A stretch of DNA of 63,253 nt, filler included, from Dicyema japonicum (GCA_011109175.1; 8 parts of 8 records of this genome joined end to end with filler, not necessarily neighbours in it); one strand, 5' to 3'; counted from the first letter of the whole stretch, positions 27,701 through 49,566 are shown. Numbers and translations are program-made. The notes: generated by a model not told the origin, from the sequence alone.

Positions 27701-28342
27701 ACACTTAAATATATTATTATTTATAAATAAATTTATTTTTAAATAACATAAATATCTTGTTCTGTAACCACTACCAAAAAAGCAATTTTGTAGTTCCTTA
27801 GTATGACTGAGAAATCGGGTCTGTTCGCTACAAGTGTAGGCAGTTATCTTGAAAATGTGACTCTTGTAAAAACTTTATAAAAATTATATCTGTTGGCAAA
27901 GTATATTTAAATATAATTTAAATAAAAATGTCAACAATTATTAGACTTTTAAATGAGGTCTGGGATCACTTAGTTATGTGAGGACATTCTTTTTCCTATT
28001 TATTCCAGTGACCCCGGTTTATTTGTGATTATAATTCTACAAAGCCACAAAGACAGACTTTATTTAAGCAAAACATTTTTAAAACGAAAAATACGAGAAG
28101 CATAGATAAAAGAACTAAGAAAAGATCCTTGATCGGTCCACGTACCCCACAATTGTGTAGTAAAAATTGGAGGTAAAACAGAGAGTAACTGACTTTTTTT
28201 AAGAGACTAGACTTTTTTATAAATTAGATGCCACGTGTCGTGAAACACAGTGACTTTCCTAATTGATCTCCGTTGCTGGTGGTAATAATGAAAAATGAAA
28301 CTTAGTTTATTAAATTAAACCCCGAAAAAATAGCAAATATTA

Positions 28343-28686
28343 TTAATTAAAGAAAATATTGAGGCATCTTCTTAGATTTCTCAATTCATCAAGTATTTCA
28401 GTAACACATTCATGTTCCTATAGTTAAAATACCAAAATACCAAAAGTAGATCCTGAATAACAGGGATTTGCGATGACCGTTCAGCTAAAGCCTGTATTAA
28501 TGAAGAAACAGATTCAGCTTGAGTATTTTCCATGGTAGAATCAATCGACGGTGGATCTTCAGCTGAGAGTTCGCGAATATTATCCATTAAGCTGTTATTA
28601 ATTTCTTCTAATTTTGATTCGTAAAACTCGATTCTGCCGTTAAGATGATTAAATATTGGGTGTCCATGAGTGTCTCGTTCGTCCAT
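28343..28686 (-). CDS. Novel small protein, type A copy 1 (106 aa, one 23-nt intron at 28418-28440)
   Basis: MDERDTHGHPIFNHLNGRIEFYESKLEEINNSLMDNIRELSAEDPPSIDSTM..QDLLL|EHECVTEILDELRNLRRCLNIFFN*. ATG, GT-AG intron and stop are conserved in three copies. Confidence 0.75.
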
Positions 28687-28787
28687 TTTTATGTTTAATA
28701 ATCATTTAAGGAATTTGTATTTATAATTAAATTATAAAATTTCACGTATAATAGTCATAATTTTTTGTACACAAAATTCTAAACTTT

Positions 28788-29042
28788 CTATGAAAAAATA
28801 GGAATTGACTCATCTTGAATATTCGATACTCCACTGGAATGGTTCTCAAGGAATGGGCATCTTCTACTTTTTATGCTGGTCCTGGATGGACTCGTGTGAC
28901 TTTGGAAGGACTCTGTTACTGTGAATTGGTAACTGGATAAACTTAATTCGTTGTCAACTGTTAACTTCTTTCTCGGCGTAACTGGAGTTAACAATAATAT
29001 TAGATAAGAAAAAATCACAAAATTTCTATTTAAGGTTAACAC
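28788..29042 (-). CDS. T-module ORF (S/T-rich, TPRKKL), 5' exon unresolved; copies at ~31100-31330, ~36900-37130, ~47150-47347
   Basis: Frame after a putative acceptor (..ccag/acag|ttacg) reads TPRKKLTVDNELSL..DESIPIFS*. Some copies are frameshifted. Confidence 0.35.
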   Translation of the reverse strand: MLTLNRNFVIFSYLILLLTPVTPRKKLTVDNELSLSSYQFTVTESFQSHTSPSRTSIKSRRCPFLENHSSGVSNIQDESIPIFS

Positions 29043-29141
29043 TTCCTATGTTAGAAGAGTTACCGACCGTTCATTTTACTACCTTCGTTATTTCTTTAGT
29101 CAGATAAATGATCATATATTCCTCTTTATGGATTGTGGCTT

Positions 29142-29494
29142 GCAAATGTCACGATCTTCCACATTGAAGTTATCTGCAATCGAGGAGACTGCAGTAAGGT
29201 TAATTGGACCAGATCACAACATCCAACCTATTGAAAATTTTTTAATTGAAATACAACGAAAACTATTAAAGGAGGCTGTTCTACCGAGCTGCCCTCTATT
29301 CCAAATACTATCGAATTATCTACAATCATACAGAAATTGTGAGCCGATGCCATGTCCTATGAGAAGAGCTGTTCAGGATTCTCGACCCCGCCGGACTCGT
29401 CCTCACCTTTGTCGGTCTGGGATCACTTAGTTAGATGAGAACTTTTATTTCTTTCTCTTTGACCCAGTGATCCTGGGGGTAATAATAATAATAA
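29142..29494 (+). mobile_element. 5'-truncated LINE insertion with 15-bp TSD and (AAT)n tail
   Basis: TSD TATGGATTGTGGCTT at 29127-29141 and 29495-29509. ORF end ..ILSNYLQSYRN..SRPRRTRP..*; tail gggggtaataataataataat. Site is empty in the other cassette copies. Confidence 0.88.
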
Positions 29495-30207
29495 TATGGA
29501 TTGTGGCTTATCGCGAATTTAAAAACTAATAGGAATTATTCTTAGAGTTTAAACTTCACATATATTGTCAGCGGACTCAATAACACATGGAAGTAGGAAT
29601 ATTCTGTAACCTCGTTAATATCCAATGTGACTTCCTTGAGTTAATTCTCTAAAGGCAGCACATCGAACATTCTCCCTAAGATAGTACGTGCCTCTTCCTA
29701 ATGAAATCAGAAAAATCACCATTTAACCTGCCCTACAATCAACAGAAGCTGTCACATTTTTACATAAGAGTAGCTAAACGTCCATAATTGTACTGTCACT
29801 AAAGCAAGTGTCGATCTAATTTCCCTTTGAGAAGCGTCATTTAAAATTTATAGAAATGTATTTGTGGATGCTTTAGTTGATCTTTACTACTATCTTGAGA
29901 TGCAGCGTTATATCAATTATACTTGNTACAATCAGACAGAAGCTGTCACATTTTTACATAAGAGTAGCTAAACGTCCATAATTGTACTGTCACTAAAGCA
30001 AGTGTCGATCTAATTTCCCTTTGAGAACCGTCATTTAAAATTTATAGAAATGTATGTGGGCATGCTTCAGTTGATCTTCACTACTATCTTAAGATGCAGC
30101 GTTATATCAATTATACTTGAAAAAGATCATTATTTATATTAACTATGAAATTAGAAAAATTAATTTTATTATTTAAATTATTTAGAAAAAAAAGAAATTA
30201 ATCAAAA

Positions 30208-30700
30208 ATGATCTCTTACGATTGCAACAAATCAACTGTAGAACCCATGAATCTCACGTGTGTCGTGGATTTTGAGTGTATCCATACGTCCCAGCTTCTA
30301 GAGGAAACGAATAGATTTCCCGATTATCCATTCAGTATGCTCAACTACGATGAGCTGGAATGTGAACCTGTCAATCAGCACTTTGTATTTCTTCCTTGGC
30401 TTTCATAACCTCGTTTTTCTCCTAAGTCAATATCGAAATACTACTTAGATGGATAGTGAGGAATATCGTAGATCAAACCTACACGTGTCTATATTTGTTC
30501 ACATAAAGTACTATGTCTTCCCTTGAGTGTTAGCCACGTTTATGAGTTGTTGATTGTTCGTGGAATATATTCCCTAAGGAATCTGAAAGATGTTAAATGC
30601 AGTTTAAAACAACACGTGGCCTAATTTTGAGTAGGACATCTTTAAATATATAAATCTCTATTTGAATCTTTCTAACCAAAAAACTATTAGAGTTTTTCTA
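30208..30700 (+). CDS. M-module gene or pseudogene of unknown product (copies 37833-38212; inverted ~46200-46510; 3' part ~42960-43200)
   Basis: MISYDCNKSTVEPMNLTCVVDFECIHTSQLLEETNRFPDYPFSMLNYDELECEPVNQHF|gt.. is conserved across copies; downstream exons differ or are broken. Confidence 0.4.
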
Positions 30701-31461
30701 TTNNNNNNNNNNNNNNNNNNNNNNNNNNNNNNNNNNNNNNNNNNNNNNNNNNNNNNNNNNNNNNNNNNNNNNNNNNNNNNNNNNNNNNNNNNNNNNNNNN
30801 NNNNNNNNNNNNNNNNNNNNNNNNNNNNNNNNNNNNNNNNNNNNNNNNNNNNNNNNNNNNNNNNNNNNNNNNNNNNNNNNNNNNNNNNNNNNNNNNNNNN
30901 NNNNNNNNNNNNNNNNNNNNNNNNNNNNNNNNNNNNNNNNNNNNNNNNNNNNNNNNNNNNNNNNNNNNNNNNNNNNNNNNNNNNNNNNNNNNNNNNNNNN
31001 NNNNNNNNNNNNNNNNNNNNAATTTGTATTTATAATTAAATTATAAAATTTCACGTATAATAGTCATAATTTTTTGTACACAAAATTCTATACTTTCTAT
31101 GAAAAAATAGGAATTGACTCATCTTGAATATTCGATACTCAACAGGAATGGTTCTCAAGGAATGGGCATCTTTTACTTTTTATGCTGGTCCTGGATGAAC
31201 TCGTGTGACTTTGGAAGGACTCTGTTACTGTGAATTGGGAACTGGATAAACTTAATTCGTTGTCAACTGTTAACATCTTTCTCGGCGTAACTGGAGTTAA
31301 CAATAATATTAGATAAGAAAAAAACACAAAAATTAGATTTAAGGTTAACCATCAATATTAATAAATAGTTAAATATTCGAGACACTTCTTATGTTAGAAG
31401 AGTTACCAACCGTTCATTTTACTACCAATGTTATTTCTTCAGTCAGATAAATAATCATATA

Positions 31462-33403
31462 CAGTAATCCCTAATTTTTTTTTTTTACAAATAGGAAAAT
31501 TTATTAATGAAAAAGAGTTCAAAATTAAGGCATCTGAATGGCCATGCTATTTCCCCTAACAATAGCCAACGAGATACGTTCTCGGATCCCTAATTAATCC
31601 AACTAAAAAAATTTGGATGCCTTTCGGATTGTGAAAGGAAAAAAAATATTAATTTTATTGTAGTTAATATTAAGGTTTTCACATTTAATAATCTCTCCAT
31701 TTAGCATCAATAATTTACTCATCGACATTATACTCTTCACAAAGAATGACGATTTCGTTCTCGCCGAGCACTTCTGTTTTAGTTATTTCTTATTTATAGC
31801 AATTTCAGTCCTTTCGATACTCATTCAAAACAGGATCTTGCATTATATCTTTATTAGCAAATTAATCAAGACATTTAATTGCCTCAGTCTTTTTAAAACA
31901 ATTTTTATGATTTTTTACTTCATGTTTGAGATACCAAAATGATGGTTTTCCGCAAATTCACAAAAATTCTTTTTTTCCAAATCAAGGGAATATAATCCAA
32001 AAAAGCCATTTTCTATAATAATACTTAAAGTTCTTGATTATTCCTGCATCCATGGTTGAAGATATGCAGTTGTGTTTTTTGGAAGGAATAGAATTTATAT
32101 TTTCAAAAAATTTCTTTAAAACATGGAACATTATCAATCAATAGAAATAATTTTTTTCTATAACATTTTAATTCATCACTATGATGACTGATGAAAACAT
32201 TAAAAAATTCTGTTGGCATATATACCCTTTTATTTACAAAGTACAATAATTTTCAAAATCTAAATCTTTTTTAAATCTTGGTTTTTTATTATGGTCAATG
32301 AAAAGGATTAATTTTTATTGTTCTAGTTTCATTGGCACAAATAGCTATAGTAATCCTCAATTTTGATTGCTTTATTAAACCCTTTTATTTACAAAGTACA
32401 ATAATTTTCAAAATCTAAATCTATTTTAAATCTTGGTTTTTTATTATGGTCAATGAAAAGGATTAATTTTTATTGTTCTAGTTTCATTGGCACAAATAGC
32501 TATAGTAATCCTCAATTTTGATTGCTTTATGCCATTTTTATCTTTAGATGAAATTGTTTTAAAAAAGTAAGATTGAAAAAAGAGTCTAGTTTCATCCATT
32601 AGTCAAGGTCAACTTATTTTAATTGATCATATTTGTTTATTCAAATTAATTTCATCTTGTGTAAGATGTTAGCTTCTCCGTGAAAACTTTTAGTTTAAAA
32701 TTAAATCTTCCTTTAATTCTGTGAAAAAAGAGTCTAGTTTCATCCATTAGTCAAGGTCAACTTATTTTAATTGATCATATTTGTTTATTCAAATTAATTT
32801 CATGTTGTGTAAGATGTTAGCTTCTCCGTGAAGAACTTTTAGTTTAAAATTAAATCTTCCTTTAATTCTGTGTAGCCTTCACTAATTTCAAAGTTATTGA
32901 TTCCAAGCTTTTCACAAAATACTTTAGCGTATGAAATGATGATATCTTCAGTAATACAACCATTAAGTTCATTTAATCAACAAGTGATTATCTAGTAGAT
33001 GATATTTTCCACTGGACTATCTTGACTTGTTAATCGTAGTTTCAGTTTGCCAACATTCACGGTTTTTTAGAATTTTTGAAAAAGTAGAATTTCCCAAATA
33101 AGAGTTGATTTTTATATCGTAGATATGGGATAATTCTGAGAGTTACGTGTTTTTAATTAAAAAATTAACTTTTTTCTAACAACTTGGTTCTGTTAGATTT
33201 TAAATTTAAATGTAAATTCATCTGAATGTATGATAAAAAAATAAATTAATACAAAATTATTATTAAATGTATTTCGGAAATTGAAGATTCGGTTTATTGA
33301 AGGCTGTTTGTATGAAACTTTGTAAAATTTACTAACTAATCAAAAAAATTCGGATTAGTGAAGTTTTCAAAATATTGAAGTTCTGATTAATAAGGGTTTA
33401 CTG
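31462..33403 (-). mobile_element. pogo/Tigger-like DNA transposon, degenerate, with TIRs and TA TSD
   Basis: TA|CAGTAATCCCTAATT(aatcc) ... attaataagggtttaCTG|TA. Minus-strand IIISYAKVFCEKLGINNFEISEG resembles the Tigger HTH. Right end repeated at ~38370-38982. Confidence 0.8.
31477..31585 (-). mobile_element. 5'-truncated CRE-like retrocopy with poly(A) and 10-bp TSD, inside the pogo left TIR
   Basis: Minus strand RERISLAIVRGNSMAIQMP*, then AATAAA and an A-tail. TSD ATCCCTAATT at 31467-31476 and 31586-31595. Confidence 0.85.
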
Positions 33404-34294
33404 TAGTTATTACGTAATAATAGGATTATCATATTATTGATGTGGACTCTGATTGTTGACATTATAGGCTTAGATTCCTAGTCACAGAAACATTTATAAC
33501 CTTGTGTGGCGTTATAACGTGGTGTGGCTTGTGGCGTTCTGCTAACATTTATAATTATTTTCTTTTTTTCCTTTTTAAAATAAATCTTTCATTGTAAAGT
33601 TAAATAAAAATATAGGAGGATAAATGTCAGAGAGAAGAACTGGCTCATTGAGCGCATTTCCTTACAGATCGTAAGGGGAAATGCGCTTTAAATCCTGAGA
33701 GCAGCCAGCGGCCTTTAACTATTTGGTTTTATTTTTCAATAAATTGTTATTACTTAAAAAAAGTAAAAATAAAAATATTAAAAAAGATGACTTTTTTACC
33801 TAAAGATGTCGATGACCTTGGTAAAATCAATTTTTATAAAATTTAAAAAAGATGACTTTTTTACCTAAAGATGTCGTTTCGCTAAAATCTCGTGATGTTT
33901 ATTGATGAACTTATGCAAAACCTTAAAAAATTAATTAGAGGCCATTCTGAATGTACACGGTGTTGTTGGGTTCTAAAAATTCCGTAGTGGAACCTTTCTT
34001 CATTCTTTGAACTGTTGATTTCTTGTCAAATGATGTGGACTCTGATTGTTGAAACATTCGAGATGAGTCAATATCTATTTTTTCTAGGAATTTTAGAAGT
34101 AAACATACAAAATATGACTAACATAGTGAAAATTAAGAAATTAACTTTTGGACTCTGATTGTTGACACATTCGAGATGAGTCAATATCTATTTTTTCTAG
34201 GAATTTTAGAAGTAAACATACAAAATATGACAAAAATAGTGAAAATTTAGAAATTAACTTTAAATGGGATATTCTTAATAACTGCTCGGCAATT

Positions 34295-34630
34295 ATGTCA
34301 TCAGAAGAAAGTATTGAAAACTGGATATTAAATTACCTAAATGGCGAAATTAAATATTATAAAAAACGACAAACACAGATCAATATAATATTGGACGATT
34401 GGACTTGTGTACTCATGACGGAGATCCACCTAATCCTGATACATCCATGGATCAAAATTACCCTAGTGACCAAGGTTCATAAAATTGTTATTTTTAGAGA
34501 TGTTACTGCGAGAACGTGAGGTCTTTTCTCTATCGATGGTATGTTATTTTATCAATTATAGGAATATGAATGTAACCGTGCAATCCTGAATGCTATTAGA
34601 AGGTTACGCAGAAATCTAAACTTTCATTAA
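34295..34630 (+). CDS. Novel small protein, type B copy 1 (two 23-nt introns; one 1-nt CC>C deletion)
   Basis: MSSEESIENWILNYLNGEIKYYKKRQTQINIILDDWTCVL[H]DGDPPNPD..DQ|EMLLREREVFSLSM|EYECNRAILNAIRRLRRNLNFH*. Confidence 0.65.
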
Positions 34631-36457
34631 TTACTAATAAACGCTTTATTTTGGTCGTTAAGTTAACTGACTTGAATTCATTTTCATTATTAAACAGAAA
34701 TCATCCTCTCGTTTTTTTATTTTTTATTCTACGCAAACTCGATGCTTCCTTCATTTAGAACTTCTCGTTATCAATTCAGTCAGGTTCAGAAATTCATTAC
34801 TGAGACAGGATGTGTGATAAATTTGACGTTGATGCTTCTTTTTTTTGGAAATAAAAGATAATAATTTTTATTATCGTAAATATTACAAATTTATTGTTTT
34901 TTATGGTAAATTAACTTGTCTAGGATTAATATTAAAATAAGGTAGAAATGCTATATTTTGGTATCAAAGTAATGTTTGTGTCTTTGGGGGAATGGTCACT
35001 GAGAAGAAAAAAAATCTTTTTCAAAATAATGTATTAATTTTTATTGGTAAAAATAATCAAATATATCCAAATAAATAAATAGAGTGGATGTTTTTTTGAC
35101 AACTGCAAGAGATAATTTGTAGGAGATTCTTAATAACTGCTCGTCAAAAATGTCATTAGAAGAAATTATAGAAAACTGGATATTTAAAAAAGGTTTTTGT
35201 TCAATTTTCACGGAGTAGTCCATCAATACTGTAAAAGATCCACCAATTCATCCTATTATTGAACTAACATCTATATTAGAATCAAAATGATATCAGACTC
35301 TATCAAAATCTAGTGAACACCATATCCGATAATATAGAGATGATCCAAATGTATAAAAGTTGTAAAATTAACAGAAGAGAATCCAATGAGTTCCATCTAC
35401 ACCAGAAACACATAAATCATCGGTTAACGTCTTAACTAGGAAATTGATGAGGAATCTGAAATCAATGATAAAGGAAAAGTGATAAAACAAGTTTCTTAAT
35501 CCTCTTATTTCAATAAAATCTTTCGTTGATTCGATAAATTTTTTAATAAAAATATTATGAACAAGATAAACGATGAACCATTATTTGACAATATATAAAA
35601 ATTTAATGTATTTTCAGTAATACCGTCTTCTTCAAAATTAAAAGCAATGTAAAAGCTACGTGAGAGATGAATCAAAAATTTGTCCAATAAAATTGTGATC
35701 AATCTGATTGCATTCAATATTGAAGAGAATATTACACAAATTTTCAATAATGAAGAAATTATACAAAATGACTGGCAATAATAATGTGGTTATACTCCGA
35801 TATTAAAATTTTATTATATAGTGGTTGGCCATACTGAAATATATTATTATCTTTTATAGATAAATTTATTTTTCAATAACATAAATATCTCGTTCGGTAG
35901 CCACTATAAAAAAGCTATTTTGTGGTCGTTTAATAATAATAAGAGGTAGGGTTTGTTCGCTACAAATCAAGGCTGTTATCTCAAAAATATGACGTTTGTC
36001 AAAACTTTATAAAAATTAAATCTGTTGACAAAGTATATTTAAATACAATTTAAATAAAGATGGTAACAATTATTAGACTTTTAGATGAGGTCTAAGATCA
36101 CTTAGCTATGTGAGGACATTATTTTTCCTTTGTACCCCAGTAACCCTGGTTTATCTGTGATTATAATTATACAAAGCTACAAAGATTGACTTTAAACAAA
36201 AAATTTGTAAAACGAAGTATCGAGAGATGAACTAAAAAATATCTTTGATCGGTCCACGTTCCCCGCAATTGTTGTAGTAACAATTGGAGGTATTACAGAG
36301 AGTAACTGACTTTTTTCAAGAGATCAGACGACTTTATAAATCAGAAGCCATGTGTAGTAAAACACAGTGACTTCCGTAATTGATCTCCGTTGCCTGTGTC
36401 AAAATAACAAATAAAACTTAGTTTAATAAATTAAACCCGGAAAAATAGCAAATATTA

Positions 36458-36801
36458 TTAATTAAAGAAAATATTGAGGCATCTCCCTAGATTTCTCAAT
36501 TCAACAAGTACTTCAGTAACACATTCATGTTCCTATAGTTAAATGACCAAAATACCAAAAGTAGATCCTGAATCGCAGGGATTTGAGATGACCTTTCAGC
36601 TAAAGCCTGTATTAATAATGAATCAGATTCAGCTTGAGTATTTTCTATGGTAGAATCAATCGACGGTGGATCTTCAGCTGAAAGTTCGAGAAGATTATCC
36701 ATTAAGCTGTTATTAATTTCTTCTAATTTCGATTCGTAAAACTCGATTCTGCCGTTAAGATAATTAAATATCGGGAGTCCATTAGTGTCTCGTTCGTCCA
36801 T
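36458..36801 (-). CDS. Novel small protein, type A copy 2 (106 aa)
   Basis: MDERDTNGLPIFNYLNGRIEFYESKLEEIN..QDLLL|EHECVTEVLVELRNLGRCLNIFFN*. Intact frame and intron. Confidence 0.75.
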
Positions 36802-38369
36802 TATTATGTTTAATAATCATTTAGGGAAATTGTATTTATAAGTAAATTATAAAATTTCACGTATATTAGTCATAATTTTTTGTATACAAATTTATAAACT
36901 TTCTATGAAAAAATAGGAATTGACTCATCTTGAATATTCGATACTCCACTGGAAGGGTTCTCAAGGAATGGGCATCTTTTACTTTTTATGCTCGTCCTGG
37001 ATGAACTCGTGTGACTTTGGAAGGACTCTGTTACTGAGAAAGTGGGAACTGGATACACTTAATTCGTTGTNAAGTGGGAACTGGATAAACTTAATTCGTT
37101 GTCAATTGTTAGCTTCTTTCTCGGCGTAACTGTATTTAACAATAATATTAGATAAGAAAAAATCAAAAAATTTCTATTTAAGGTTAACCATGACTACTAA
37201 TACATAGTTAAGTACTGGAATCACTTCCTATGTTAGAAGAGTTACTGACCGTTCATTTTACTACCTTCGTTATATTTTTAGTCAGATAAATGATCATATA
37301 TCTCTCTTTATGGATTGTGGCTACATCGCGAATTTAAAATCTGATAGAAATTATTCTTAAAGAGTTTAAACTTCACATATATTTTCAACTGACTCACATA
37401 ACACATGGAAGTAGGATTATTCTGTAACCTCGCTAATATCCAATGTATTATCCTTGAGTTAATTCCCTAAAGGCAGCACATCGAACATCCTCCCTAAGAT
37501 AGTACGTGCCTCTTCATAATGAAATCAGAAAAATCACCATTCAACCTGCCCTACAATCAGACAGAAGCTGTCATATTTTTACATAAGAGTAGCTAAACGC
37601 CCATAATTTTACTGTCACTAAAGCAAGTTTCGATCTAATTTTCCTTTGAGAACCGTCATTTAAAATTTATAGAAATGTATGTGTGTATGCTTCAGTTGAT
37701 CTTTACTACTATCTTGAGATGCAGCGTTATATCAATTATATTTGAAAAATAGCATTATTTATATTAACTATAAAATTAGAAAAATTAATTTTATTATTTA
37801 AATTATTTAGAAAAAAAAGAAATTAATCAAAAATGATCTTTTACGATTGCAACAAATCAACTGTAGAACCCATGAGTCTCACGTGTGTCGTAGATTTTGA
37901 GTGTATTCATACGTCCCAGCTTCTAGAGGAAACGAATAGATTTCCCGATTATCCATTTAGTTTTCTCAACTACGATGAGCTGGAATGTGAACTGGTCAAT
38001 CAGCACTTTGTATTTCTTCCTTGGCTTTCATAACCTCGTTTTTCTCCTAAGTCAATATCGAAATACTACTTAGATGGACAGTGAGGAATATCGTAGATCA
38101 AACCTACACGTGTCTATATTTGTTCACATAAAGTACTCTGTCTTCCCTTGAGTGTTAGCCACGTTTATGAGTTGTTGATTGTTCGTGGAATATATTCCCT
38201 AAGGAATCTGAANNNNNNNNNNNNNNNNNNNNNNNNNNNNNNNNNNNNNNNNNNNNNNNNNNNNNNNNNNNNNNNNNNNNNNNNNNNNNNNNNNNNNNNN
38301 NNNNNNNNNNNNNNNNNNNNNNNNNNNNNNNNNNNNNNNNNNNNNNNNNNNNNNNNNNNNNNNNNNNNN

Positions 38370-38982
38370 ATTAATTTCATCTTGTGTAAGATGTTAGCTT
38401 CTTCGTGAAAAACTTTAGTTTAAGATTAAATCTTGCTTTAATTCTGTGTAGCCTTTACTAACTTCAAAATTATTTATTCCAAGCTTTTCACAAAATACTT
38501 TAGCTTATGAAATGATAATATCTTCAGTAATACAACCATTAAGTTCATTTAATCAACAAGTGGATGATATTTACCACTGGAATGTCTTGACTTGTTAATC
38601 GTAGTTTCACAGTTTGCCAACATTCACGGTTTTTAGAATTTTTGAAAGAGTAGAAATTCCCAAATAAGGGTTCATTTTTATATCGTAGATATGGGATAAT
38701 TCTGAGAGTCATATTTGATGTATTTTTACTTCACAAATTTACTTTTTCTAACAAATTGGCGCTGTTAGATTTTAAATTTAAATGTAAATTCATCTTAATG
38801 TATGATAAAAAAATAAATTAATACAAAATTATTAATAAATGTATTTCGGAAATTGAAGATTCGGTTTATTAAAGCGTGTTTGTAAGGATACTTTGTAAAA
38901 TTTCACTAACTAATCAAACAAAATTCGGATTATTGAAGTTTTCAAATTATTGAAGTTCGGATTAATGAGGGTTTACTGTATT
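38370..38982 (-). mobile_element. Second copy of the pogo/Tigger right end
   Basis: Colinear with ~32790-33403; ends attaatgagggtttactgta. Confidence 0.8.
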
Positions 38983-39189
38983 TTTTTACGTAATCATAGG
39001 ATTATTGTATTATTGATGTGGACTCTGATTGTTGACATTATAGGCTTAGATTCCTAGTCACAAATGACTTTTATAACCTTGTGTAGCGTTATAACGTGGT
39101 GTGACTTGTGGCGTTCTAGTAACATTTATAATTATTTTCTTTTTTTCCTTTTGAAACTAAATCTTTCACTTTAAAGTTAAATAAAAATA

Positions 39190-39570
39190 TTAAAAAAGAT
39201 GACTTTTTACCTAAAGATGTCGAAAACCTTGGTAAAATGTTCCACTGACCCAAAAAAACCCGTTAAAATTAATTTTTATAAGATTTAAAAAAGATGATTT
39301 TTTACTTAAAGATGTCGAGGACCTTGGTAAAATGTTCCACTTACCCATAAAACCCATTAAAATTAATTTTTATAAGATTTAAAAAAGATGACTTTTTTAT
39401 TTGAAGATGTCGAGGACCTTGGTAAAATGTTCTACTTACCCGTATGACCCGTTATAATTACTTTTTATAAGATCTAAAAAAGATGACATTTTACTTAAAG
39501 ATGTCGAGGACCTTGGTAAAATCAATTTTTATAAAATTTAAAAAAATGACTTTTTTAAAGATGTCGTTTC
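39190..39570. repeat. ~95-bp minisatellite upstream of type B gene (shorter version at ~33778-33880)
   Basis: aaaaaagatga..aagatgtcgaggaccttggtaaaat.. recurs near 39192, 39287, 39381, 39476 and 39540 with diverged units. Confidence 0.85.
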
Positions 39571-39870
39571 GCTAAAATCTCGTGATGTTTATTTATGACT
39601 TATCCAAAACCTTAAAAAATTAATTAGAGGCCATTTTGAATGGACACTGTGTTGTTGGGTGCTAAAAATTCCGTAGTGGAACTCTTCTTTATTCTTTGAA
39701 CTGTTAATTTATTGTCAAATGATGTGGACTCTGATTGTTGACATATTCGAGATGAGTCAATATCTATTTTTTCAAGGAATTTTAGAAGTAAACATACAAA
39801 ATATGACTAACATAGTGAAAATTTAGAAATTAACTTTAAATGGGATATTCTTAATAACTGTTCGTCAAGT

Positions 39871-40207
39871 ATGTCTTTAGAAGAAAGTATTGAAAACTGG
39901 ATATTCAATTACCTTAATGGCGAAATTAGATATTATAAAAGGCGACAAACACAAATCAATATAATTTTGGACGATTGGAATTGTGTACTCCATGACGGAG
40001 ATCCACCTAATCCTGATACACCCATGGACCAAAATTACCTTAGTGAGCAAGGTTCATAAAATTGTAAATTTTAGAGATGTTACTGCGAGAACGTGAGGTC
40101 TTTTCTCTATCGATGGTATGTTATTTTTTCAATTATAGGAATATGAAAGTAACCGTGCAATCCTGAATGCTATTAGAAGGTTACGCAGAAATCTATACTT
40201 TCTTTAA
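39871..40207 (+). CDS. Novel small protein, type B copy 2 (96 aa, two 23-nt introns)
   Basis: 337 nt minus 46 nt of intron gives 97 codons: MSLEESIENWIFNYLNGEIRYYKRRQTQINIILDDWNCVLHDGDPPNPDTPMDQNYLSEQ|EMLLREREVFSLSM|EYESNRAILNAIRRLRRNLYFL*. Confidence 0.75.
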
Positions 40208-41789
40208 TTACTAATAATCGCTTTATTTTGGTGGTTAAGTTAACTGACTTGAATTCATTTTCATTATTACAGAGAGGTGATCCTCTAGTTTTTTTAATTT
40301 TGATTCTACGCAAACCCGATGCTTCCTTCATTCAGAACTTCTCGTCTTCAATGTCTGTCGAGGGCTTTCATGAATCGTGTAGCTAAGTGCAATAGAGATA
40401 TGCCACTACCACAACCCACATAATATAAGGTTCCTTAGTCATTCGTCTACTCTCACTTAAATGAAGAGGGTAAGATAAGTATTATAGTGACTATTGTTTC
40501 TCGTGCCGCATCTGTCTGCAAATCCCTGGTTTTCAAAAATTCCTACCATAAGAAGTAAATTCGATTCAAATTTTGCTATAATCAATTTGCACAAAGAAAT
40601 AAGCTCGCGTAAACGAACATTTAATTGCATGTAGTTTCTATTGTCACGACTGATGGACAACAACTTAGAGACTTTTAATTTAATTAGTTAGTTTTTAGAG
40701 CAGAAGTTAATAATATTGTAGATATCTATCCAAAGCGCTGGCAGCCTCTTTCCTCTTCTTAAGAATGTTTGCCACCTACCCATCCTTATTCCTACTCCAC
40801 ATTGGAATTAGTCAGTTCTCTTCCAACTTCAAATGGTCAGTTCCACTTGTTGTTTTGAAACAAATATTAAATATCACCGGAAGGCTTTAATCCCATTGTT
40901 GTGTCCAGCCACCATACTTTCAAAAGTTCTCTTCAACATGATCGGATTCCATGTTAAACGTATTATTTGAAATATTTACTATTATTTTCAAAATATTACT
41001 ATTTTGTGATCCACTGTGATATTTTTAGTATTAAAGCGTTATTAGAGAAAAAAGTCATTATTATGTATATTGTGCCTCCTTGTAGCAGATAATCTCCATG
41101 TCCACCCGTTGTGCGTTTTCTTAAGGAGAGTGAGATAAGATTTTCTTTACTCCATCGCGTATTTGCATCGCTGAAATCTGCTGAATCCGCTTGTGCACTG
41201 CGAAAGCAAATGCGTAGTTAAACAATCAGATTCGAGGAACAGTAAGCCATATTTACTCATATAAAATTACTGCCTGATGGTCTCTTGTAAGAAGCAAGCT
41301 GATATGACATTTTTAACAAGATTCAAGTATAACGGATACATCTCCACCGTCCTAAAATCTATGCACGTTGAATAAGTCAAAGTTGAAGTGTTGACATTGA
41401 TAAGACGTAGAGCGAAAAAATATAATTGCACCAACAAAAGAATAATAAATTAAATTTTTCAAATAAAATAATTTTTGAAAATCAATATATTTAACAAAAA
41501 AATTAAATATTTTAACAATTAACCAGCTTATCGCCTGTCTAATCGCCCGCCTTATCATCCAGGTTCGATCTGGTTGCGAAACAGCTCCGTGAGCGCCTTG
41601 TTCAATTGAGATCTCTGTCGATATGGTATCTCTGGACTCTGCCTCCTATAGTGCAGTATCATGCTTTTTTGGGTCCGCTTTAAAACAACGGACTGTAGTT
41701 AGTCCTGCAACTTCCTATCTACTTCTAACTGTCTTAGTTTACCTTTGTGGTACTTTGTTGCAATTCCTTCTTACGTCATTACTATTTGA

Positions 41790-42050
41790 ATAAATAGGAT
41801 GCGATCTTGATGCAACGAAAGTACATAGGTACTCGCCTTCGAATTCGATCGTACAACTACTTTATCGAACCAATTCTACTTTATAACGCGGGGACCTGGT
41901 GCTTAACTACAAAAGAACTAGAAAACCTCAACTCTTTCCACAGAAAACAACTGCGACCTCTTCTGGGAGTCTACTGGCCAAACCGGATAACCAACAACGA
42001 GCTATATAGAATTACTATAAACCTAGACCATAGCATAAGTCCTATCCCTT
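41790..42050 (+). mobile_element. RTE-clade RT C-terminal fragment
   Basis: RLRIRSYNYFIEPILLYNAGTWCLT..LNSFHRKQLR.LLGVYWPNRITNNELY. Confidence 0.8.
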
Positions 42051-42229
42051 AACCATGTCTAATTCTAATCCCTCCCCTAAACATACCTAAGTGTATTCTC
42101 AACCACAATCAATATCTAAAATCACCCATAATTAATGCATAATATCAACCCTAATCAATATTTAATCTCATTCATAATCAACACCTAAATCTAATTTCCA
42201 AATTAAGCCGAAAAAATAAAAAATTCTTT

Positions 42230-42560
42230 CTAGAATGGACAGTCATTTAAAACAATTTTTATTCTGCTTTGGTGGATCATCATTGTTTGCGAGTTACCAC
42301 CATCTATGTGCACCATATGTTCTTGTATATCTCTACTTGATAAATTGTTGTGTCCAAGTGCTAATATAAAGCACCTTTTTTTTGTTGATGGTTTGAAATC
42401 ACAATCCTTTCGTGGAATAACTCTATCTTTAACATTCAAAGATTCTTCATTTTCCAGCGTCAGTTCTTACGCATTTCTTCTGCAGCAAGCAGACTATGTC
42501 TTCGAGCAGAATCCACTGACAGCGATAAATCTTCATCTTCATACTGTAGTAAATTCAAAC
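42230..42560 (-). CDS. Possible unknown gene, one frameshift
   Basis: After a putative acceptor: YEDEDLSLSVDSARRHSLLAAEEMRK / TDAGNEESLNVKDRVIPRK..LNDCPF*. No family recognised. Confidence 0.3.
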
Positions 42561-43974
42561 GTTAATTCGAAATTTTTGGCGAAAAATCAAGTCCATTAAA
42601 AATTTTGATTGGAGCATGTTTCGTTGTATCATGATTGGGTATATTGTAACTGAAGACAATATTAATCCTATATTTTCGAATTACTCTGCAATAAACTTTA
42701 ACTAGCAATGGGGCAAGTCTCCAAATAAGCTGTTTACACTTTCTGAAAGGCGACGCGTCAAGAAATCCAATTATAAGCCACCAATTTCATATCAGGGTTG
42801 AAAGAGTACAAGAAAATTCGTGCTCCCAAATCCTCTGGCCAACTAGTAAACAAATTACAGAGAACAGCATCAGGGAAGTCTCTTTCAGGAACAAAGTCAT
42901 GCAAAGTTCTTTAATACTGACCAGACCACGTGGAGTCTTAAAAATTTTTTTTTGTGTTTTCAATAGAAAAACTCTAATTGTTTTTGGTGAGAAAGATTCA
43001 AATAGAGATTTATATATTTAAAAATATCCTGTCCAAAATTAGGCCACGTGTTGTTCTAATCTGCATTCAACATCCTTCAGATTCCTTAGGGAATATATTA
43101 CGAACAATCAACAACTCATAATCGTGGCTAACACTCAAGGGATGACATAGTACTCTATATGTGAACAAATATAGACACGTGTAGGTTTGCTCGAGGATAT
43201 TCCATCGATTGGATGTCCTGAAAGACTAACTGTAATTTTTTTAAGGCTCCTTTTTTGATAGTAGTCACGTGTGTAAAGAATATGTTCGGCTCTCAACTCA
43301 AAGACATTGACCACGATTTGTTGAATTGTCTAAGGTTACAAGTCCAAATACATTAACGGAAGTCCCAGGATTGGATGAAAGTTTTAATTCTCTAAATATC
43401 CCTCACTATTCCGCAGCTGTCTCACTACCTACAATCAAATAAAATCACTTGACAGTATCGTGGTTCCCCAATACCTTATGCCTCGTCTACCAACAAACAC
43501 TTAACGAATAATCATGGAAGTAACAGAAGTCACCATCCCCCCTGTCAAATTAACATCCGAATATTGTGGCTCACACAGAAAACTTATTTATAAGCCTTAA
43601 TTTCGAGAACATCGGCTGGTGGACGAATACAAGTCATTAGACCTAAAATATGCTGTAAGTTAGTTTGTCAACAAAAATATCCCAATCACTAGTCAAATCG
43701 ACAATTTAAAAAAAATCAGGTAACTTAGTGAAGTATTAAATGTATCTATTATCCACGGATCCGATTCCGATCTTTTTTTGTGTCATCTTAGACTGGGCGC
43801 CATTTAAGATGAGTGAATCGCATGATTTTTCTCTAATAAAAGGGAAAAGAATGCAATATGAGAAAGGAAGAGAAGTTTTTGCCCATGATGTAGTCAAGGA
43901 AAATTACTGAGTATGCATAGAGACATGACATTCTACATTGCCTTGGTATAAAAAGCACATTAACTGAGTCAAAG

Positions 43975-44200
43975 GGTAAGAAATAAAAAGTTCTCATCTA
44001 ACTAAGTGATCCGAGACATACAAGGAAGAGGACGAGTCTGGCGGGGTCGAGAATCCTGAACAGCTCTTGTCATCGGAGATGGCTTTGGCTCAAAATTTCT
44101 GTATGATTGTAGATAATTCAATAGTGTATGGAATAGAGGGCAGATCGATAGACTAGCCGTTGTAATTCTATTAATAATTTTCAATGCACTGAATTTTGTG
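43975..44200 (-). mobile_element. Diverged copy of the LINE 3' end seen at 29142-29494
   Basis: CPLFHTLLNYLQSYRNFEPKPSPMTRAVQDSRPRQTRP followed by ggatcacttagttagatgagaac. Confidence 0.8.
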
Positions 44201-45489
44201 TTCTGGTCCAAATATAAGAATAAATTATATATTCTGATTGTTTTAAATTTTATATATATTTTGAAATCGATATTTAATTTTTTTTTAATTTTCTATTGTC
44301 AATTTTTGGTCTTCTTGCCCGCTAGGACAAAAACCCTTCTTTTAGCTTACAACTTCCCAGCAACACCAGATCTGTTTGTCAGCAATGATGATTTAAAATA
44401 ATAACTTTCAATGTTAAGTAATTTCCTGGAAGACATATTTTTTAATATTCGACAATTCAACCTAAGATTTCAGTACATTTTCATTAAAACATGGAAAATA
44501 GAAATCAAAGCATTTGCTTATATGTGGGAAGTAGTACATGTGTCTTAAATATAAAAAAAGTTAGAAATCAGGAACACCATAACTGTAAATATTTTTGAGA
44601 CAGTCTTGTTGAGCCTACTTAATATATACGAGATACCAAATTAAGATTTAAAAAACACACTATAGATATAAGCAGGAAATTATCCTCTTTTATCTAAAAA
44701 ACTGAAAGGTCTGTTAAACAAATCGTCAATGAAATTATGTAGCTCTTCTAATTGATCTCCGTTGATATCGTGAAAAGTAACGTTACATCAATTTTGTAGG
44801 CGCTGATCAGAATTATATTTGCTAAAAATACACTCAAATGAGTCTTAGTGTGAGTGAATGATTCCAATTAGAAAAATAAATTCCAAAGACAAAGGGTAAC
44901 CAAACTAACTAACTCCTTGATTCACTTGAACTTGTCTTCAGGTAACGACGTTGTCCCGTGTGAGTGAATGATTCCAATTAGAAAAATAAATTCCAAAGAC
45001 AAAGGGTAACCAAACTAACTAACTCCTTGATTCACTTGAACTTGTCTTCAGGTAACGACGTTGTCCCCGGGGAAGTTTTGTTGAATCTTCTTGATGCCGG
45101 CCAGGCATTGGGACCCTCCTCAGTAAGGTGGATCCATTAACACCATCGGAAGGAAAAAAATAATTTTGACAAACGATCCACGTAGCACCACATTGTATTA
45201 TTTATTTAATAACCCAGAAAAAAGAACATCAAGAAAGAAGGAGTAAACCAACTCATTAAGTGATCCCGGTACGCCTCAACAGAATCGAGAGGTGTTTCCT
45301 ATGTTCCTCCAGAGTACCTACGGCTTTCCTGAATAGACAACGATCATCTTTCATTAGAGTTTGAAGAGGGAGCCACGCGAAATTAAAAGTGTTCAATAAA
45401 TGGTATTCAAATAAGCATATAGTTAAAGTATATTATATTTTTTACGATTTTGAATTTTTTATATTATTTAAGTATAAATTAATTTTAAA

Positions 45490-45950
45490 TAATAATAATA
45501 TTTCAGTATGGTCAACCAACATATAGTAATAGTCTAAATCGCGGTTAGACTGCATTTTTTGTTAACCGCAGTTGCTACTTTATTTTCGTGCAATTTTTTT
45601 TCATTGTTGAAACTATTAGGACTATCAAAATTTTATCGAATAATTTTTCGATTTATCTCTCATATAATTTTTTTAAATTGCTTTTAATAGTAAAGATGGT
45701 ATTATTGCCGAAAATACACCAAAATTCTACTAAATTTACGTACTTTATAATTATTTCTCATATTATTTTTATTTTGGAACACTTCTACTATTTATCTCAA
45801 TCTATTCTATTGTGGGGGAGATGCTATATTTTTATCTCCTTCCAATATTATTGCTCAAAAGCTAGTTGCATATGTTTTGAACATTTTTCGAATTTAAAGT
45901 GTGACTCGAAAACTTGTTAACTTATGTATGATTTGAAGGATGTCTTTCAC
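45490..45950 (+). repeat. Older diverged relative of the cassette X module
   Basis: Shares aataatatttcagtatgg..aacc and the frame TIRTIKILSNNFSIYLS vs AIRLISILLDNFLIHLS. Confidence 0.55.
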
Positions 45951-46199
45951 CGAAGCTTAAATTCAAGGTTTTTTCTCAATCAATTAGGGGAGTGCTTGTT
46001 TTTGTTTATCTCCATGTGATATGAAGTCTTCAAAAAAATCTCCACGTGAGTAGAATGATTAAGCATATTATGACACATCACATACTTAATAAAGTGAAAT
46101 TCTTTGGTGGAGCAGATTGTCTATTTTCTCCATTCCAGTCACGCTGTTCACGTCTTATAAATTATTGTAATGCCTCCTTGTTTATTTAAAAAAACTTTT

Positions 46200-49100
46200 T
46201 GATTTTTTAATTCTTTCCGTTCGAGGAAGGGAAGCCATTAGTATGGGATTCCACGTGCATTGCCTTCCGTAATCGTCGGAAACTCGTCGAAAACTCGTTA
46301 GACACGTTGTATGCTCGTGAAAAGGTTATAATACAAACTGCTGTTGGACCAGTTTACATTCCAGCCCATCGTAGTTGAGACGACTGAATGAATAATAGCG
46401 AAATCTATTCGTTTCCTCTAGAAGCTGGGACGTATGGCTACGCTCAAAATCCACAACACACGTGAGACTCAGTGGCTTCTACAGTTGATTTGTTGCAATC
46501 GTAAAAGATCATTTTTTAAATTATTTTAATAATAATAATTAATTTTTCTAATTTCATAGTTAATATAAATAATGATCTTTTTCAAGTATAATTGATATAA
46601 CGCTGCATCTCAAGATAGTAGTAAAGATCAACTGAAGCAGGCCCAAATACATTTCTATAAATTTTAAATGACGGTTCTCAAAGGGAAATTAGATCGACAC
46701 TTACTTTAGTGACAGTACAATGATGGACGTTTAGCTACTCTTATGTAAAAATGTGACAGCATCTGTCTGATTGTAGGGAAGGTTGAATGATGATATTTCT
46801 GATTTCATTAGGAAGAGACACGTACTATCTTAGGGAGAATGTTCGATGTGCTGCCTTTAGGGAATTAACTCAAGGATAAAACATTGGATATTAGCAAGGT
46901 TACATAATATATCTACTTTCATGTATTATGTAGTCCGTTGAAAATATATGCGAAGTTTAAACTCTAAGAATAATTCGTATCAGATTTTAAATTCGCGATG
47001 AGCCACAATCCATAACGAGGAATATATGATCATTTATCTTACTAAAGAAATAACGAAGGTAGTAAAATGAACGGTCGGTAACTCTTCTAACATAGGAAGT
47101 GTTAACCTTAAATAGAAATTTTGTGATTTTTTCTTATCTAATAATATTGTTAAATACAGTTACGCCGAGAAAGAAGCTAACAGTTGACAACAAATTAAGT
47201 GTATCCAGTTCCCACTTTCTCAGTAACAGAATCCTTCCAAAGTCACACGAGTTCATCCAGGACGAGCATAAAAAGTAAAAGATGCCCATTCCTTGAGAAC
47301 CCTTCCAGTGGAGTGTCGAATATTCAAGATGAGTCAATTCCTATTTTTTCATAGAAAGTTTAGAATTTTGTGTACAAAAAATTATGACTATTATACGTGA
47401 AATTTTATAATTTAATTATAAATACAAATTCCTTAAATGATTATTAAACATAAAAATGGACGAACGAGACACTCATGGACACCCAATATTTAATCATCTT
47501 AACGGCAGAATCGAGTTTTACGAATCAAAATTAGAAGAAATTAATAACAGCTTAATGGATAATATTCGCGAACTCTCAGCTGAAGATCCACCGTCGATTG
47601 ATTCTACCATGGAAAATACTCAAGCTGAATCTGATTCTTTATTAATACAGGCTTTAGCTGAACGGTCATCGCAAATCCCTGTTATTCAGGATCTACTTTT
47701 GGTATTTTGGTATTTTAACTATAGGAACATGAATGTGTTACTGAAATACTTGATGAATTGAGAAATCTAAGAAGATGCCTCAATATTTTCTTTAATTAAT
47801 AATATTTGCTATTTTTTCGGGGTTTAATTTAATAAACTAAGTTTCATTTTTCATTATTACCACCAGCAACGGAGATCAATTAGGAAAGTCACTGTGTTTC
47901 ACGACACGTGGCATCTAATTTATAAAAAAGTCTAGTCTCTTAAAAAAAGTCAGTTACTCTCTGTTTTACCTCCAATTTTTACTACACAATTGTGGGGAAC
48001 GTGGACCGATCAAAGATCTTTTCTTAGTTCTTCTATCTATACTTCCCGTACTTTTCGTTTCAAAAAGGTTTTGCTTGAATAAAGTTTGTCTTTGTGGCTT
48101 TGTAGAATTACAATCACAGATAAACCGGGATCACTGGAGTAAATATGAAAAAGAATGTCCTCATATAACTAAGTGATCCCAGACCTCATTTAAAAGTCTA
48201 ATAATTGTTGACATCTTTATTTAAATTATATTTAAATATACTTTGCCAACAGATACAATTCTTATAAAGTTTTTACAAGAGTCACATTTTCGAGAAAACG
48301 CGACCTCTCATTCTTATTAAGCAACTACAAAATTGCTTTTTTGGTAGTGGTTACTGAACGAGATATTTATGTTATTTAAAAATAAATTTATTTATAAATA
48401 ATAATATATTTCAGTATGGCTAACCACTATATAATAAAATTTTATAGTCGAAGTATAACCACATTATTATTCCAGTCATTTTTAGTTTATTAGTATAATT
48501 TCTTCATTATTGAAAATTTGTGTAATATTCTCTTCAATATTTAATGCAATCAGATTGATCTCAATTTTATTGGATAACTTTTTGATTCATCTCTCACGTA
48601 GTTTTTACATTGCTTTTAATTTTGAAGACGGTATTACTGAAAATACATTAAATATTTATACATTTCCACATAATGGTTCATCGTTTAACTCGTTCATAAT
48701 ATTTTTATTACAAATTTTATCGAACCAACGAAAGTTTTTATTGGAAATAAGACAGTTAGGAAACTTGTTTTATCACTTTTCCTTATCACTGATTTCAGAT
48801 TCCTCATCAATTTCCTAGTTAAGACGTTAACCAATGATTTATGTTGTTTCTGGTGTAGATGGAGGTCATTGGATTCCCTTCTTTATCGGATATGGAGTTC
48901 ACAAAATTTTGATAGAGTCTGATATCATTTTGATGCTAATATGGATGTTTGTTCAATAATAGGATATTTGGTGTATCTGTACAGTATTGATGAAAAATTC
49001 CGTGGAAATTGATCAAAAGCCTTTGACTGAGGCTCTTGATCCTTTGATAACTCGAGAAGGCTTCGCTTGGAAACAGATCAATGACATTTCATTCGTCTAT

Positions 49101-49566
49101 CCCTATACGCACAATTCAAAAAACANTTGGATTCCCTTCTTTATCGGATATGGAGTTCACAAAATTTTGATAGAGTCTTATATCATTTTGATTCTAATAT
49201 GGATGTTTGTTCAATAATAGGATGATTTGGTATATCTGTACAGTATTGATAAAAAATTCTGTGGAAGTTGATCAAAAGCCTTTGACTGAGGCTCTTGATC
49301 CTTTGATAACTCGAGAAGGCTTCGCTTAGAAACAGATCAATGACATTTCATTCGTATATCCCTATACGCACAATTCAAAAAACAGATTTGACGGTGTTTG
49401 ATATATTACTTATATTACTCTCTGAGTAACTCTTGATTCTCCTGATGACGAAGTTTAGTAAAATTTTTCCTGGACTGATTTGTCTGATTTTTCAATGGTG
49501 TCAGATTCACTTTATTAAACGTTCAAAATGAGATATAATTTGAATTTATAATAGAACTATTACTAC
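46200..49566 (-). repeat. Amplified cassette, inverted copy
   Basis: Reverse complement of ~26540-30400, lacking the 353-bp LINE insertion. Confidence 0.9.
47456..47799 (+). CDS. Novel small protein, type A copy 3 (106 aa)
   Basis: Same structure as copy 1 with intron gtattttggtattttaactatag. Differs from copy 1 at two residues in the first exon (AESDSLL vs AESVSSL). Confidence 0.75.

Follow-up and report, generated by a model that had tools for sequence, protein, structure and literature searches.

In the window, a stretch of 63,253 nucleotides (nt) from Dicyema japonicum (GCA_011109175.1) in which parts of eight records of this genome are joined end to end with filler, we identified a family of short spliced genes, types A and B, that would encode proteins of about 100 residues. 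We consider it probable that the genes are genuine, compact, and protein-coding, and that they form a taxon-restricted family in which two paralogous types diverged long ago. The analysis was confined to one piece of genome spanning 23.6 kilobases (kb; positions 25929–49566), and the copy counts given below hold for that piece. A preliminary description of the same DNA, made from the sequence alone, had placed three type A genes of 106 codons and two type B genes here, and all five were recovered at those positions.

Gene structures, coding evidence and selection

Each of the three type A genes is composed of 82 codons, a 23-nt phase-0 intron with GT..AG borders, and a further 24 codons followed by TAA, giving a predicted protein of 106 residues. 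Gene A1 spans 28343–28686 on the minus strand (exon 1, 28441–28686; intron, 28418–28440; exon 2 with TAA, 28343–28417), and A2 spans 36458–36801 on the same strand (exon 1, 36556–36801; intron, 36533–36555; exon 2 with TAA, 36458–36532). The third copy, A3, is carried by an inverted block and spans 47456–47799 on the plus strand (exon 1, 47456–47701; intron, 47702–47724; exon 2 with TAA, 47725–47799). The intron reads GTATTTTGGTATTTTAACTATAG in A1 and A3 and carries two changes in A2; at the protein level A2 differs from A1 at 12 residues and A3 at two. Because an in-frame TGA is positioned six codons upstream of the type A ATG, we assigned this ATG as the start codon.

Both type B genes lie on the plus strand and contain three exons. 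B2 (39871–40207) is intact, and its exons (39871–40051, 40075–40115, and 40139–40207) encode 96 residues and are separated by two 23-nt GT..AG introns at 40052–40074 (phase 1) and 40116–40138 (phase 0). B1 (34295–34630; introns 34475–34497, phase 1, and 34539–34561, phase 0) is 1 nt shorter, as CTCCATGAC in B2 corresponds to CTCATGAC in B1, with one C absent at 34414/34415. B1 is either a broken copy or the product of an assembly error, and we cannot tell which.

In both types a phase-0 intron of 23 nt is located directly before the E[HY]E motif, as had been described, and at this shared site 16 of the 23 bases of the second type B intron match the type A intron on reading of the intron sequences. 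The first, phase-1 type B intron, also 23 nt long, had been missed and has no counterpart in type A. All seven introns of the family have the same length and GT..AG borders, and their removal joins conserved protein segments, whereas unspliced type B would meet an in-frame TAA inside intron 1. We predict that all seven are spliced. The shared protein motifs proposed earlier are present at every residue in A1, A3, and B2; A2 shows two changes, I to V and R to G, both in the last exon, and B1 has ILN in place of IFN. Likewise, the conservation of frames across copies described earlier fails for B1, which otherwise has the same layout as B2.

The two types align as proteins. In BLASTP between A and B, exon 1 aligned over 43 residues at 42% identity (E 2e-9), and the last exon showed 10 identical residues out of 23 (E 5e-5). 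BLOSUM62 scores for the three frames, all taken from one ungapped DNA alignment, were highest in the proposed frame (76 and 35), which was stop-free; the other two frames contained stops and scored 32/−12 and 4/−17. Shuffling of alignment columns reached the observed protein score in one of 2,000 trials for exon 1 and in 13 of 2,000 for the last exon. The two types share their start codon, stop position, and phase-0 intron site, and the open frame is intact in four of the five copies. The coding DNA of A and B is only 55–61% identical, in line with the earlier view that the types are unrelated at the DNA level; this view does not extend to the promoters, the intron, or the 3′ flank, as discussed below.

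Codon comparisons were done exon by exon. Because the A–B comparison shows saturation at synonymous sites (proportion of synonymous differences, pS, 0.62; synonymous divergence, dS, ~1.3; nonsynonymous divergence, dN, 0.55), we interpret A and B as old paralogous types, in agreement with the age first proposed for the family. Within the types, the A1–A2 comparison gave eight synonymous changes and 12 nonsynonymous ones (dN/dS 0.38, p 0.045), and the B1–B2 comparison six and 11 (dN/dS 0.43); a pooled Fisher test on both pairs gave p 0.011. These ratios, which are not near 1, point to moderate purifying selection on the proteins (omega ~0.4). The dS values of 0.12–0.13 equal the divergence of the downstream flank (13.8%). 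Across promoter and gene together, divergence amounted to 6.2% compared with 13.8% in that flank (p 1e-4), and to 0.6% compared with 4.7% between alpha blocks 1 and 3, which carry A1 and A3 (p 7e-5). Indels are absent from the genes and the 350 nt preceding them but abundant in the flanks. Selection would thus maintain both promoter and protein, with B1 in the course of decay.

Predicted protein and database searches

The predicted proteins carry a net charge of −13 (type A) and −4 (type B). As initially reported, they contain no signal peptide, and we found no membrane segment either: the N-termini are polar, and the highest Kyte–Doolittle mean over 15 residues is 0.9. In an AlphaFold2 model of exon 1, residues 10–42 form a helix with a predicted local distance difference test (pLDDT) score of 87–94, followed by a low-confidence ED-PP linker and two further helices at 52–72 and 75–81. 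Significant amphipathicity was measured for helix 1 (shuffle fraction 0.004) and for the last exon (0.018–0.029). The helical character suggested earlier is supported by both the exon 1 model and this amphipathicity. We propose that the product would be a soluble, acidic, all-helical protein of ~100 residues, in which an amphipathic helix is followed by an ED-PP-x-x-D linker, a second helix, and a basic-faced C-terminal helix (LRxLRR). We infer a small intracellular protein of the helical-bundle or coiled-coil kind, which would act by packing into a helical bundle or a coiled-coil oligomer in the cell.

The collections searched contained none of this piece's own proteins, and closely related proteins from this genome or from sister genomes would have escaped all of the searches. 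The Pfam scan of the separate exons of A1 and B2 gave nothing at gathering cut-off. The best matches, PF10666 (Phage_TAC_8; 14.4 bits with a cut-off of 33.7, E 0.042) and PF06563 (DUF1125; 12.4 bits with a cut-off of 28.3, E 0.24), were rejected as chance matches; the likeness consists of weak scores over short helical stretches only. No usable match was obtained in PHROGs (best E 0.022 over 24 residues) or with an exon 1 profile against PDB sequences (best E 0.66). Foldseek with the exon 1 model against PDB returned no match at E ≤ 10, and a word-index protein search with exon 1 of A1 gave no candidate. Exon 1 in the ESM Atlas was closest to unnamed viral clusters (best 0.87) with recognition below threshold, and this candidate was also rejected.

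A HMMER profile built from exon 1 of all five genes, run against 1.84 billion representative proteins, matched three long repeat proteins only, none of them a relative. The best of these, P0001, is a repeat protein of 358 residues (E 2.8e-7); the 11 residues QALAERSSQIP occur unchanged both in it and in the middle segment specific to type A. We judged this match to be due to chance because it consists of a single 27-residue stretch, matched five times in tandem repeats and corresponding to a region absent from type B, and because, by our estimate, chance alone would produce about one exact 11-mer match in 2.4e11 residues. On the basis of these searches, we regard the family as lineage-restricted and previously unrecognised, as first supposed.

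Several observations weigh against the interpretation of these sequences as functional genes. The frame of B1 is broken at codon 41 by the 1-nt deletion; the selection signal is moderate and based on 37 substitutions; A1 and A3 show two differences in 344 nt, both nonsynonymous; and the type B gene is as diverged as its flanks, not less. Folding and database searches were run on single exons, and the AlphaFold2 model was built for exon 1 alone from a five-row alignment, with a mean pLDDT of 72 and a predicted template modelling score (pTM) of 0.38. Together with the two motif residues altered in A2, the lack of homologues in the searches, and the low Atlas recognition value for exon 1, the frameshift in B1 and the A1–A3 differences would fit non-functional frames, either decaying relics or chance frames that are alike through recent duplication or gene conversion. 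This is nevertheless very unlikely in our view: despite the saturation of synonymous sites between the types, 42% identity, start, stop, and intron site are kept, the frame is open in four of five copies, only one shuffle in 2,000 reaches the observed score, and omega is below 1.

Shared upstream region and 3′ flank

The region upstream of each gene is shared between the two types and appears to serve as a promoter. The putative promoters are located at 28687–28830 (minus strand, A1), 36802–36945 (minus strand, A2), 47312–47455 (plus strand, A3), 34036–34294 (plus strand, B1), and 39736–39870 (plus strand, B2). Over ~140 nt before the ATG, A and B are 72–74% identical, rising to 88% in a core of 33 nt, and blastn aligned ~100 nt of this region at 76–78% identity (E 1.5e-10) and left the coding DNA unmatched. 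The core corresponds to a 24-nt box, AGATGAGTCAATWYCTATTTTTTC, in which 22 of 24 positions are the same between types. The box occurs seven times in the piece, compared with 0.00 expected: once upstream of A1 (28792–28815), A2 (36907–36930), A3 (47327–47350), and B2 (39750–39773), twice upstream of B1 (34061–34084 and 34174–34197), and once facing an assembly gap (gap 1). The two boxes of B1 result from a 113-nt tandem duplication within its promoter (34036–34148 and 34149–34261, 96.5% identical), whereas B2 has a single one.

The box lies 106–129 nt before the family ATGs, and upstream of A1 a TATA-like ATAAAT is positioned ~40 nt before the ATG. The heptamer TGAGTCA is invariant in all seven boxes; taken alone, it has nine sites in the piece compared with 3.2 expected, which is only a modest excess. 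We take TGAGTCA within the box to be a classical site of the AP-1/GCN4 basic leucine zipper (bZIP) type. In the conserved upstream region we found no conserved RNA fold (consensus −3.2 kcal/mol, one covarying pair), no Rfam family at gathering score, and no conserved reading frame, and an exact scan of JGI metagenome contigs for the box gave no matches.

Downstream of the genes, the first ~65 nt past the TAA also align between A and B (28278–28342 and 40208–40270). If translated through the stop, this stretch gives hydrophobic residues. The 1-nt indel that A2 carries there argues that it is a conserved 3′ untranslated region (UTR) and not coding. Translation through the stop would be expected under a ciliate-type code with TAA read as Gln, in which case the proteins would continue into a hydrophobic, tail-anchor-like stretch rich in L, I, and F. 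We consider this most improbable. Although introns of 23 nt and a G+C content of ~30% fit Paramecium-like ciliates too, and the alignment past the TAA is in keeping with such a code, neither TAA nor TAG occurs among the eight Gln codons of A1 and B2, homology stops at the TAA in both types, and the A2 indel, 30 nt past the TAA, would break the read-through frame. Type A, moreover, has no TGA for more than 60 codons downstream, and T-rich UTRs look hydrophobic in any frame. The piece is also gene-poor and repeat-rich, and contains a relic resembling a long interspersed nuclear element (LINE) whose nearest Atlas clusters are eukaryotic and mostly molluscan.

The gene unit of either type would consist of a ~140-nt promoter with the 24-nt box and the TATA-like element, an ATG, two (A) or three (B) exons, a TAA, and an AATAAA-like signal. 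Since the promoter is common to both, types A and B are probably made together. That the upstream regions of A and B are more alike than their coding sequences has two possible causes, namely tighter constraint on regulatory DNA or homogenisation by conversion. With regulatory DNA more alike (promoter, 72–88%; intron, 70%) than the coding DNA (55–61%) and the proteins (~40% residue identity), we entertain, as a tentative and rather unlikely extension, that A and B are co-regulated, fast-evolving helical partners forming a hetero-oligomer. If true, the pair would constitute a stage- or stress-induced, parasite-specific factor under diversifying pressure in an animal whose introns are the shortest known. 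Of the new findings, the most useful is the stronger conservation of promoter, intron, and 3′ flank between A and B relative to the coding sequence, which yields a compact candidate cis-regulatory module composed of the 24-nt box with TGAGTCA and the TATA-like element. To our knowledge, transcriptional control in this lineage is essentially unstudied.

Duplicated blocks and comparison with known systems

Self-comparison showed that the piece, with a G+C content of 25–36%, is made up of duplicated kb-scale blocks with identities of 88–97%. These are arranged in the order alpha-beta-alpha-beta, followed by ~6 kb of unique DNA and an inverted alpha block. Alpha copies were identified at 26530–30702 (copy 1, carrying A1), 35369–38212 (copy 2), and 46330–49566 (copy 3, inverted), and beta copies at 32793–34784 (copy 1, carrying B1) and 38370–40363 (copy 2), with one type A gene per alpha block and one type B gene per beta block. 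The local amplification proposed for the family is thus supported, although it would have proceeded by segmental duplication of whole blocks (more than 4 kb for alpha, 2 kb for beta) and not of the genes alone, and one of the resulting copies is broken. The arms of alpha copies 1 and 3 extend to the very end of the piece, with 26530 pairing with 49566.

Two assembly gaps interrupt the piece (gap 1, 30703–31020; gap 2, 38213–38369). Both are intergenic and lie 1.4–3.3 kb from the nearest family start codons, and no family reading frame crosses either of them. A sixth, orphan promoter, which copies the DNA upstream of type A (31021–31349, minus strand; 96.7% identical to 28712–29040; box at 31101–31124), points into gap 1 and ends 25 nt short of the expected ATG. 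Because this promoter is cut by the gap and faces inward, gap 1 may conceal a fourth type A gene, or such a gene may have been lost there. No type A 3′ end was seen at the left edge of gap 1, and so either the gap would be longer than estimated or the copy truncated. A relic of a type B 5′ end is also present (35122–35188, plus strand), comprising 67 nt that include the first 12 codons and are 88% identical to 34267–34332; it lies where beta copy 1 meets alpha copy 2.

The arrangement of the copies raises the question of whether their number is partly an assembly artefact, with A1 and A3 representing two haplotypes or a single repeat placed twice by the scaffolder, and with fewer true genes as a result. 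The two differences in 344 nt between A1 and A3, the inverted blocks at both ends with arms reaching the end of the piece, and two gaps of Ns at repeat borders all fit such an error, as do the 1.24% heterozygosity and 4.1% gaps of the Dicyema assembly (PMC6736024). The flanks of alpha copies 1 and 3, however, differ by 4.7%, well over that heterozygosity, and A2, B1, and B2 differ from their partners by 6–14% in a consistent tandem order. We consider an artefact unlikely, and it would leave the existence of the family and of its two types intact.

Alternatively, the small open reading frames could belong to a mobile or satellite-like repeat as its passenger or accessory genes, with the apparent promoter being part of the element and the copies reflecting its spread instead of selection for the proteins. 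All copies are indeed embedded in kb-scale repeated DNA amid minisatellites, the central unique part contains a decayed LINE-like relic, inverted pieces of alpha block 1 are found again at 42962–44158, and the 67-nt relic and the orphan promoter are signs of messy turnover. We judge this explanation to be improbable on several grounds. The open reading frames of the alpha and beta blocks gave no Pfam match to a transposase, integrase, or reverse transcriptase, and the gene units are not bounded by terminal inverted repeats, with only AT-rich chance pairs found. The arrangement is one in which large blocks of different kinds were duplicated locally, both in tandem and in inverted orientation; constraint is seen at nonsynonymous sites, and synonymous sites match the flank; and the LINE relic lies outside the blocks. 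Within these blocks and the exon searches, no accessory protein of a transposable element and no known family was matched, either of which the preliminary description had named as counting against a family of its own. A lineage-specific gene family spread by block duplication is the reading we retain.

The relic itself spans 41593–42049 (plus strand) and contains an 84-codon frame (41798–42049), which reached 0.96 to eukaryotic, mostly molluscan Atlas clusters with recognition below threshold and had no Pfam match. We presume that this frame resembles the segment following the reverse transcriptase domain of animal non-long terminal repeat (non-LTR) elements. Inverted copies of two segments from alpha block 1 occur in the central unique region at 88–91% identity (29274–29468 with 43963–44158, and 30460–30702 with 42962–43203); these segments may be fragments of a dispersed repeat, and the first is richer in G+C than its surroundings. 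Tandem repeats with long units are found between the genes at 26190–26533 (172 nt, two units), 32221–32530 (155 nt, two), 32574–32872 (~148 nt, two), 39163–39522 (95 nt, four), and 48869–49384 (259 nt, two). Between alpha copies 1 and 2, the interval 29927–30587/37552–38212 is 96.4% identical without a single indel, compared with a block average of 88%.

An open frame of 68 codons (30202–30405) is kept in all three alpha copies, where nine substitutions lead to four residue changes; it showed no Pfam match and no clear codon signal. A scan of the alpha and beta blocks for codon-position periodicity gave no convincing signal of further genes. Long open reading frames are few in all frames of the piece, and scans of the same interval found no transfer RNA gene and no Rfam family at gathering score.

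The genes provide a clean, manually checked case of a gene family restricted to one taxon, and conservation-based support for seven introns of 23 nt, a length long held impossible in animals. It is otherwise an ordinary orphan gene cluster, and such clusters are common in reduced parasite genomes.

Animal introns of 22–27 nt have been reported only for myxobolid myxozoans, among which Henneguya salminicola has a G+C content of 29%, and for D. japonicum (PMC13644364). Judged from the DNA alone, intron length, stop-codon use, and the weakly supported LINE relic would most likely indicate an animal with ultra-short introns, either a myxobolid or a dicyemid. The introns of the present family fit this 20–27 nt class, being GT-AG introns of exactly 23 nt that begin with GTA or GTT and carry A residues a few bases before the AG; the difference is that their splicing is deduced here from protein conservation across the interruption. 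The genome of D. japonicum has 36.7% G+C and 49% repeats and contains LINEs, in addition to the gaps and heterozygosity given above, and 313 lineage-specific gene clusters have been reported for it (PMC6736024). The genes described here are consistent with such clusters in being short and without relatives, in their location in a repeat-rich and AT-rich genome, in their ultra-short introns, and in their local multiplication, and they differ in that no specific named family was matched.

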